The notes beneath the pieces are model-generated. The model saw only the letters and a program-made list of their open reading frames with translations, ran no database searches and was not told the DNA's origin. A stretch of 63,623 nt of DNA, filler included, from Klebsormidium nitens (taxonomy: Eukaryota; Plantae; Klebsormidiophyceae): NCBI GenBank assembly GCA_000708835.1. It is 9 parts of 9 records of this genome, joined end to end, with 100 filler letters (N's around TTAATTAATTAA, not from the genome) between each part and the next. Parts side by side here need not be neighbours in the genome. Positions count along the whole stretch, not along the records: positions 56,506 to 58,190 come from DF237932.1; 8 more parts are not named here. One strand, 5' to 3'. Below, piece by piece: positions 56,506 through 58,290 of the stretch (position 1 is the stretch's first letter; each line of letters begins with the position of its first letter). The translations under genes were made by a program, and so were the position numbers.

Positions 56506-57229
56506 GCACGTTCAGAGCATCCTTTTTGAGTACAACACCTCTTATCAGGAGTCTTTAAAAACTTCTCCTTTCATGGTCACGTATGGACGTCTGCCCATCA
56601 TTTCGGCTGATCATTTTTACCCTCGGCCGCACCTTCTGCCCTTTGAGTCCAATGTCGATTCGTCTTGGGAACACCATGAAGCACGAGTCGCTCAAATCAG
56701 GGTTTTGCAGAGCCAAGCAAAGCTACAGATCGAGCAGGCGCAAATTAGGCAAAAGGAAAATTATGCTCGTTGGAACAGTAAGCGCCGCGCCAGAGCAGAT
56801 AAACTAACCAAGGGTGATTACGTGCTCATGCAGAAACCCGGTACTATCCGTGGCTTCCAGCTTCATTGGGAGGGTCCGTACATATTTAAAGGTTGGGTCA
56901 GTACGAGTCAGCGCCGCCTAGCTGTCCTGAAGGACAACCGCGGACGCGTGTGGTTCAGAAAAGGGGAAGAGATAGTCAGATTTGAGCCCCGTGAACAATT
57001 CGTTTATGATTACATTGACAATGGCCAAAACATTGATCCCGCTTCAGTCCAAAACCTCCCAGCCGATCCTCCTAACGGTGGAGACGGACCCCTTCCTGCA
57101 GCAAGAGCGCAAGATTCTGTCGAGCCTCAAATACTTCGACTTGGTGCCTTCAGTTATAAGGTCCTACGAATCCACGATCTTATCCAGGCTACCCGAGAGG
57201 GCCCTCCTCAAAATAGTAGCCGCTCTTGA
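56506..57229 (+). mobile_element. Ty3/gypsy integrase C-terminal region (end of pol)
   Basis: ILFEYNTSYQESLKTSPFMVTYGRLP...QAQIRQKENY...GDYVLM...LHWEGPY (GPY/F module). Confidence 0.88.
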
Positions 57230-58148
57230 CATCACTAGTTTTGAGAATCTTGGATGCGTAAGCATTGCCCACCACGTGCAAATGCACGGGGTCAGATGCT
57301 ACACAATTCATGCCTTTCTAGCTAACCCACGCTTTGCTTCTGACATCAAGATTAGCACCCTCTTGAAACGAACCGAAAAGGTTCAGACGTTTTCTTTTCC
57401 TTCCGTTAATACTTTTTTACTGATCGACATGCTCTCGAAAATTTTGTTGTGCTGTAAGAGTCTGCTACCGGAACGCAGAAAAGCTTTCAAGATGGTTCTG
57501 AAACCTTTTCTTTGCTCGGACTACTACCATCAAGCAGTTCAGAGAGTGGCTTATGACGTCAAACACGGCCACATCTGTCTTTTTCCTAAGAACGGAAAAG
57601 AATGTCGCTGTGCAGAACTTGCACGAGCTGCCCTCACACGGCAACTGGCCTTCGTTAACAGTCTCGGCGAATTACAAACTTCGACTGAAGAATGGAAAGC
57701 ATTCTTCAGCCCGGTTCTTTTACCTTCCGAGCCGTTCAATTCTCTTCTAGCTACTAAGCCAATCTCCATCTTTTGTCAGTATATGCAGTTCTTTTGTCCA
57801 GAGCAAGGCGGGACTTCGAACATTCAGATTATCGGTGTTCCCTCGCCTGATATCAGCCCTCTAGACATCTTCGAAGAGGATCCATATAAAGGGCGTCAGA
57901 ACACGACCCCCATAGGTGCTCGTCTGTCCGTCTTGACTTCTGTTTCTCAACCTACAGGCCCATCTCAAAGTCCACCAATGGCAGAAAACGACAGGCAACA
58001 TCTCGTCGGGACAGCTGCAGCCAGCATTGCACCAGTCAACCCGATGCTTGACAAGCTCAAGGCGTTTTCTCAGCGTGGCGCGGTGCGGGGTTCTAGCGGA
58101 CTTAGGGCCATTGACCGACTTGCGCCGTACGCCTGTGTCCAGCTTTAA
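56982..58148 (+). CDS. Extra 3' ORF of the gypsy element (up to 388 aa) with an F-box-like motif
   Basis: Stop-free 1.17-kb frame overlapping the end of pol in +1 frame; ILSRLPERALLKIVAALDITSFENLGCVS at 57177-57265. The stop is followed directly by a PPT-like AAGGGGG (58147-58153). Confidence 0.7.
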   Translation: MSPVNNSFMITLTMAKTLIPLQSKTSQPILLTVETDPFLQQERKILSSLKYFDLVPSVIRSYESTILSRLPERALLKIVAALDITSFENLGCVSIAHHVQMHGVRCYTIHAFLANPRFASDIKISTLLKRTEKVQTFSFPSVNTFLLIDMLSKILLCCKSLLPERRKAFKMVLKPFLCSDYYHQAVQRVAYDVKHGHICLFPKNGKECRCAELARAALTRQLAFVNSLGELQTSTEEWKAFFSPVLLPSEPFNSLLATKPISIFCQYMQFFCPEQGGTSNIQIIGVPSPDISPLDIFEEDPYKGRQNTTPIGARLSVLTSVSQPTGPSQSPPMAENDRQHLVGTAAASIAPVNPMLDKLKAFSQRGAVRGSSGLRAIDRLAPYACVQL

Positions 58149-58290
58149 GGGGGTTTGGCCGTTTATCTGATGAGCCAACGCAACAAGAATNNNNNNNNNN
58201 NNNNNNNNNNNNNNNNNNNNNNNNNNNNNNNNNNTTAATTAATTAANNNNNNNNNNNNNNNNNNNNNNNNNNNNNNNNNNNNNNNNNNNN

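Follow-up and report, generated by a model that had tools for sequence, protein, structure and literature searches.

Overlapping reading frames at the 3′ end of a pol gene

The window analysed here, a stretch of 63,623 nucleotides (filler included) compiled from the Klebsormidium nitens assembly GCA_000708835.1, contains at positions 56506-58190 a piece of genomic DNA (record DF237932.1) with two long reading frames on the + strand. The first of these (56507..57229, including the stop codon), open at the left edge of the piece, which cuts it, is the 3′ end of a pol gene and encodes the C-terminal part of an integrase. The second frame was listed as an ORF of 388 aa with a TTG start (56982-58148, + strand). 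It starts 248 nt inside the integrase frame, which ends at 57229, and is shifted by +1 with respect to it, since (56982-56507) mod 3 = 1. The preliminary description of this DNA, which reported a 388-codon ORF beginning in the last ~250 nt of the integrase frame, was accurate in this respect.

An inspection of related sequences (see below) led to a revised annotation of the second frame. It constitutes the 5′ part of a gene, referred to here as the accessory gene (57021..58190, + strand), which opens with an ATG codon shared with its closest relative, contains one in-frame stop, and is cut by the right edge of the piece; what is present is roughly the 5′ half of a gene of 690-760 codons. The overlap of the two frames (57021..57229, + strand, +1), across which the substitutions relative to locus L001 change phase, covers the last 70 or so codons of the integrase. 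The accessory gene encodes (i) a conserved N-terminal domain of about 100 aa (57072..57371, + strand), alignable across all of the lineages in alignment A6, and, within it, (ii) an F-box core (57180..57263, + strand), which matches positions 1-28 of the 43 positions of PF00646 and is the motif pointed out in the preliminary description.

The piece extends 42 nt beyond the end of the ORF, and no LTR is visible within it. At the base composition of the piece, the probability of 388 stop-free codons at one given place is 1.5e-8; the longest stop-free run observed is 390 codons, compared with 234 in 2000 shuffles of the piece.

The accessory gene is located within Ty3/gypsy-type elements

The integrase translation of the window is 92% identical to that of L001, a 3.5-kb contig from the public sequencing run SRR23617307. 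In the L001 integrase, Pfam recognizes rve (42.9 bits) together with the Integrase_H2C2 zinc module, while the window retains the C-terminal part of the protein only. L001 also carries P0001, the sole close relative of the accessory ORF obtained in a word search (79-81% aa identity of the ORF with P0001/L001). When 1.84 billion representative proteins were searched exhaustively with HMMER, five matches were obtained, P0001 and the distant P0002 to P0005; the homology of the distant relatives to the ORF of the window is supported by library-wide E values of 1.8e-10 to 7e-4. Further relatives were identified by a profile word search (P0006) and by an integrase-anchored search (P0007 to P0013). 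Pattern scans of JGI metagenome contigs and IMG/VR gave pattern matches, with no confirmed relative among them.

Four of the five HMMER matches adjoin an integrase; in the case of P0002 (on L002), the upstream DNA is too short for an integrase to be seen. An integrase is located directly upstream of the accessory gene in L001, L003, L004 (twice), L006/L007, L008, L009/L010, L011 and L014, and at every related locus with upstream DNA the homologous gene overlaps or abuts the preceding integrase. The integrases of the related loci are 45-55% identical to that of the window's lineage. Recurrence of the gene after an integrase was observed in many loci, originating from at least six samples, and the search of the 1.84 billion representatives found no relative of the accessory protein encoded outside an element. 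The gene is a constant component of a clade of such elements.

The order gag, protease, RT, RNase H, integrase, with a capsid of the Ty3 type, was found in L004/L005, L008, L009, L012 and L013. The 22-kb contig comprising L004/L005 carries gag (Ty3_capsid), RT, RNase H, integrase and the accessory gene in tandem: two full elements follow each other, and the unit that is repeated includes the accessory gene. Searches for an LTR pair in this family found none, and the LTR bounds in L004 are undefined because its units are in tandem. The earlier view that the ORF lies within an element can thus be retained on the strength of the upstream integrase and the tandem unit, but not on the strength of the polypurine tract (PPT) originally invoked for it.

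The tandem arrangement itself (L004:1-20959 plus L005; ENA ERZ26165376, ctg340246_1x_c) consists of two units with a spacing of 10776-10934 nt, whose blocks are 85-100% identical. The name of the contig flags it as circular and of 1x coverage, and the tandem could be either an array whose units have LTRs in common or an artefact stemming from a single long read.

Purifying selection and the start of the gene

The coding capacity of both frames was analysed by a comparison of the piece with L001, which comes from another assembly and is 82.6% identical over 1683 nt. In its own frame, the accessory gene (57230-58145; 305 codons) gave dN 0.127, dS 1.30 and dN/dS 0.098. The same DNA read with an offset of +1 (304 codons) gave dN 0.316, dS 0.175 and dN/dS 1.8, and with an offset of +2 (304 codons) dN 0.301, dS 0.206 and dN/dS 1.5; these two off-frame readings include 12 and 22 stop-containing codon pairs. 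The non-overlapping part of the integrase (56507-57019; 171 codons) gave dN 0.037, dS 0.68 and dN/dS 0.054. The comparison with L001 therefore reveals purifying selection on the accessory gene (0.10 in its own frame versus 1.5-1.8 off-frame). With its conservation and its position in the related loci, the sequences make it almost certain that this is a real, conserved, element-borne gene.

The distribution of substitutions relative to L001 shows where one frame gives way to the other. The differences fall in third positions of the integrase up to ~57076 and in third positions of the accessory frame from ~57167 onwards, while the intervening region (~57047-57196) is nearly substitution-free (0-3 substitutions per 90 nt in each phase). 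The dS value in the overlap is 0.145, compared with 1.30 downstream. Judging from the aligned sequences, this near-absence of substitutions is what a true overlap with both frames under constraint, or additional constraint at the RNA level, would leave.

Upstream of ~57050, coding constraint on the frame of the ORF is absent. The accessory gene is therefore likely to start not at 56982 but at the ATG at 57021, which is common to the window and L001 and which, in L001, is immediately preceded by a stop codon.

In the same comparison, dS also differs between the integrase (0.68; 56507-57019) and the accessory gene (1.30; 57230-58145). Saturation or codon usage, RNA-level constraint in pol, and recombination between lineages are all possible causes of this gap.

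The complete gene and the condition of its copies

Four intact relatives were identified, encoding proteins of 688 aa (L001), 761 aa (L002), 738-819 aa (L003) and 743 aa (L014). The +1 overlap with the integrase is present in all four of these intact copies and in the window. In the intact relatives, the reading frame continues, through conserved blocks, for 300-370 codons past the position of the string AAGGGGG, which stands at the end of the window's ORF and which had been described as PPT-like. The string is indeed there, but it is internal to the gene of the intact relatives, which rules it out as a polypurine tract; the same longer relatives rule out the end of the ORF as the natural end of the gene. 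Since the frame of the window is still L001-like up to the edge of the piece and the intact relatives are longer, the window copy is best described as a gene interrupted by one in-frame stop and then cut by the edge. Because of this stop it would yield at most a truncated product, in which the F-box is kept.

The other copies contain one to four breaks each (frame changes and stops). The majority of the copies are broken, as is usual for such families, a state that the preliminary description had named as refuting its proposal; four copies are intact. The integrases of the intact-copy lineages, where present, are only about 55% identical to that of the window (92% in the case of L001), and L002 does not reach far enough upstream to include an integrase.

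Two of the intact copies, those of L001 and L014 (L014:226-4594), were found in the same run (SRR23617307) and represent two element lineages, each with an intact accessory gene. Their accessory proteins show no match to each other outside the N-terminal domains. The presence of both in one sample suggests that several lineages are active within a single genome or community.

The N-terminal domain resembles F-box domains

The F-box-like motif noticed in the preliminary description is present at 57180-57263, and its identification was substantiated mainly by relatives of the window copy. The whole ORF of the window gave no F-box match in Pfam at E≤10. When its N-terminal domain was searched alone, PF00646 was matched with 13.5 bits (E 0.07), which is below the curated cut-off of 20.5 for this family. 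Five relatives exceed this cut-off: P0002 (26.4 bits), P0003 (25.1), P0005 (21.0), P0006 (24.5) and L014 (22.2). Two of them also exceed the cut-off of 24.3 for the F-box-like family PF12937 (P0002, 28.7; P0003, 24.9), while P0005 (22.4), P0006 (24.2) and L014 (21.5) stay below it. The above-cut-off matches of the five relatives are located at columns aligned with the motif of the window.

Alignment A6, composed of the N-terminal domains of seven natural copies, all of which match PF00646 at E≤10, has 13 invariant columns. These include an L-P-E core, two further leucines and a signature A-H-x-V-x-x-H. L40, P41, E42, L46 and L52 are invariant in 7/7 copies, and the second histidine of the signature is found in 6/7. 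The match to the two profiles (43 and 47 positions) is confined to positions 1-28 to 1-40, and the A-H-x-V-x-x-H signature stands where canonical F-boxes have their tryptophan-containing end. Within the protein, conservation across the lineages is highest in the N-terminal domain.

A search of the PDB (177,635 sequences) with the A6 profile returned only three matches, each of them to an F-box protein: AnkB of Legionella (5k35; the top match), FBXW7 (5ibk) and FBXO3 (9kbd). Each match is weak and non-significant (E 0.5-2.1) and is aligned on the L-P-E core. The PDB sequence search gave nothing usable with the ORF alone or with the whole-length family profile. Structure models built from 8-row alignments were unusable (pLDDT 35.6 for the window protein and 40.6 for the intact relative P0002, with values below 50 in the F-box region), and Foldseek with the low-pLDDT model found nothing at E≤0.001. 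We read the family as a divergent F-box, of which the window copy is a weak-scoring member, and on the basis of the profile matches and invariant columns we consider it very probable that the N-terminal domain of the accessory protein is homologous to F-box domains.

The remaining part of the accessory protein

In the full-length protein, the N-terminal F-box domain is followed by a helical region, a tail rich in P, S, T and Q and, in most lineages, a C-terminal domain. The helical region matches no Pfam family in the window ORF or in its relatives; the part following the F-box had been described as unrecognized, and Pfam indeed assigns it to no family. The tail is rich in P, S, T, Q, N and G, which make up 41-66% of its residues. 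The C-terminal domain is short, is conserved in most lineages, and is predicted with moderate confidence to form a small sheet (P0002). No substrate-binding domain was recognized by Pfam.

The C-L-x6-C-R-C cluster of the window is present as originally described, but its conservation does not extend beyond the window and L001, and a metal site was rejected for this reason. We found no hydrophobic segment, i.e. membrane or signal segment, conserved across the lineages, and Pfam gave no match to an env family and no chromodomain. The accessory protein is thus not env-like, and this candidate, suggested by the position of the gene after pol, was also rejected.

Two distant members of the same integrase clade carry post-integrase ORFs (L013:5735-6967 and L012:5896-7199) that match the C-terminal half of the protein only and contain no detectable F-box. 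Either a sub-clade may have acquired the F-box half, or L013 and L012 may have lost it.

Proposed role of the protein and alternative explanations

Because the accessory gene begins with a divergent F-box, the element probably makes its own ubiquitin-ligase adaptor. In the mechanism that we propose, the F-box would dock the accessory protein onto the SKP1-CUL1 ligase of the host, and the rest of the protein would recruit a protein of the host or of the element, whose ubiquitination would benefit the element. Such a mechanism would parallel the lentiviral accessory proteins and the viral and bacterial F-box proteins that borrow cullin ligases. Seen from its sequence, the accessory protein is somewhat more apt to work as an element-encoded SCF adaptor than in some other capacity. 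A more specific proposal, namely that LTR retroelements of one clade, whose hosts may be filamentous fungi, encode an SCF receptor sending a host anti-element defence factor to the proteasome, is put forward tentatively, and we regard it as rather doubtful in this full form. Such a receptor would be the retrotransposon counterpart of lentiviral Vif/Vpu and plant-virus P0, independently arisen and maintained by selection. That the target would be silencing factors specifically, as the preliminary description suggested, is less probable still.

Three other explanations were considered. A chance open frame, or a host gene beside a truncated element, might be suspected from the fact that the piece is short, ends 42 nt past the ORF and shows no LTR; however, chance is excluded by the shuffles and by dN/dS, and the gene overlaps an integrase, and recurs after an integrase in at least six samples, and no element-free relative was found among the 1.84 billion representatives. 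Both versions are extremely improbable and were rejected on dN/dS and on the integrase found upstream in the related loci; the ORF does not belong to flanking host DNA. It is also conceivable, although unlikely, that the F-box region is a C-terminal extension of Pol, reached by a programmed +1 shift or, in some lineages, by a continuous frame. Such an extension would act in cis on the integrase or the integration complex (e.g. in turnover, uncoating or targeting), and would resemble the chromodomains by which the integrases of chromoviruses are extended. It would account for the +1 offset kept in the four intact copies and the window, and for the almost substitution-free overlap zone. It would also agree with the intact L002 (L002:343-2628, 761 aa), in which, unlike in the other lineages, the stretch of 77 open codons that precedes the conserved domain contains no ATG, and with P0006 (L008:10001-12139) and P0010 (L009:3735-5816), in which the integrase and the accessory gene form one continuous ORF. 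The continuity in the last two copies may, however, be a product of decay, since the accessory gene of each is also broken elsewhere by frame changes or stops. Moreover, an ATG located 17-23 codons before the conserved domain is common to the window, L001 (where a stop codon lies just before it) and L003, the ORF of L014 also opens with an ATG, and no slippery site was identified. The shared ATGs favour initiation separate from that of pol, probably on a transcript that is subgenomic or spliced. The conserved +1 overlap of pol and the accessory gene bears on how such elements express extra genes.

The third explanation concerns the F-box itself, whose likeness to known domains could be that of a relic or of a convergent helical motif that does not bind SKP1, in a protein serving some other role for the element, for example in particle assembly, nuclear import or nucleic-acid handling. 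The sub-threshold score of the window motif fits this explanation, as does the last third of the F-box profile, which is unmatched and replaced by the histidine signature of the family. Moreover, L013 and L012 retain only the C-terminal half, so the conserved function may sit there. Nevertheless, five relatives pass the curated F-box cut-offs, the invariant columns are those of the F-box core, and it is the N-terminal domain that is best conserved across lineages; the protein has neither a membrane or signal segment nor a Pfam match to a nucleic-acid-binding family. We judge a relic or convergence to be quite unlikely, and a divergent F-box serving as an SCF adaptor remains our preferred reading.

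Comparison with known systems

F-box proteins that borrow the SCF ligase of the host are found in several parasites and pathogens, e.g. P0 of poleroviruses, Clink of nanoviruses, the ankyrin/PRANC proteins of poxviruses and VirF of Agrobacterium. The accessory gene resembles these viral and bacterial examples, and AnkB of Legionella, in that a short F-box is encoded by a mobile or parasitic genome and is linked to a unique part that binds, or here would bind, the substrate. It differs from them in its carrier, which is an LTR retroelement, in the lack of any similarity beyond the F-box core, and in that the remainder of the protein is without a known domain. The searches of Pfam, the PDB and protein collections returned no family or chain corresponding to polerovirus P0.

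Retroviruses are well known for their counter-defence genes. To our knowledge, hardly any such genes have been described in LTR retrotransposons, whose usual gene content is regarded as gag and pol only. The lentiviral proteins Vif, Vpu and Vpr/Vpx recruit cullin-RING ligases (reviewed in PMC7764263). Lentiviral accessory genes are similar to the gene described here in being extra genes near the 3′ end of pol in a reverse-transcribing element, and their products deliver a restriction factor of the host to a ubiquitin ligase of the host, which is the mechanism proposed above. In contrast, they bind adaptors or a host F-box protein without having an F-box of their own, and show no homology to the accessory protein; furthermore, on the available evidence, the host of the element is not an animal.

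Extra modules also occur in Ty3/gypsy elements, the best known being the env of errantiviruses and the chromodomains of chromoviruses. The Burro gypsy-type elements of planarians contain ubiquitin- and apoptosis-related domains, namely MATH, BIR and SUMO-like domains (PMC6431247). All of these cases share with the present one the addition of a module after or within the pol of a gypsy-type element, and Burro constitutes a precedent for modules of the ubiquitin system in such elements, although an F-box is absent from the modules listed for it (PMC6431247). The accessory protein differs from errantiviral env in having neither a conserved hydrophobic segment nor an env match, and from the chromoviral proteins in having no chromodomain. 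No published description of an F-box gene in an LTR retroelement was found in the literature searched, a body that leaves out most subscription journals.

If the proposed reading is true, an element-borne F-box gene under purifying selection would amount to active manipulation of host protein turnover, and its substrate would provide a direct handle on what restricts retroelements in the host lineage.

Host context

The close relatives of the integrase come exclusively from metagenomes and assemblies of raw runs, and the nearest named proteins are 24-26% identical. The samples concerned comprise the runs SRR23617307, SRR23617210, SRR14092358 and SRR20627847, the assembly ERZ26165376 and the metagenomes 3300060284/5. 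The CpG observed/expected ratio is 0.7-0.9, and there is no RIP signature (RIP indices negative). Ten neighbouring ORFs compared with Pfam yielded no match. In L011, a gene with a HET domain (L011:13624-15141; 70 bits) is located near a related element, on a contig that also carries a Myb gene and a glycosyltransferase. This gene content hints that the host, for that contig only, may be a filamentous fungus.

Another element was detected in L008, where a copia-type element (L008:40-5120, minus strand; RVT_2, gag_pre-integrs and rve) is located directly upstream of the gypsy-type gag. It is bounded by 187-nt LTRs that are 98% identical, and contains a 94-nt tandem duplication at 1789-1984.
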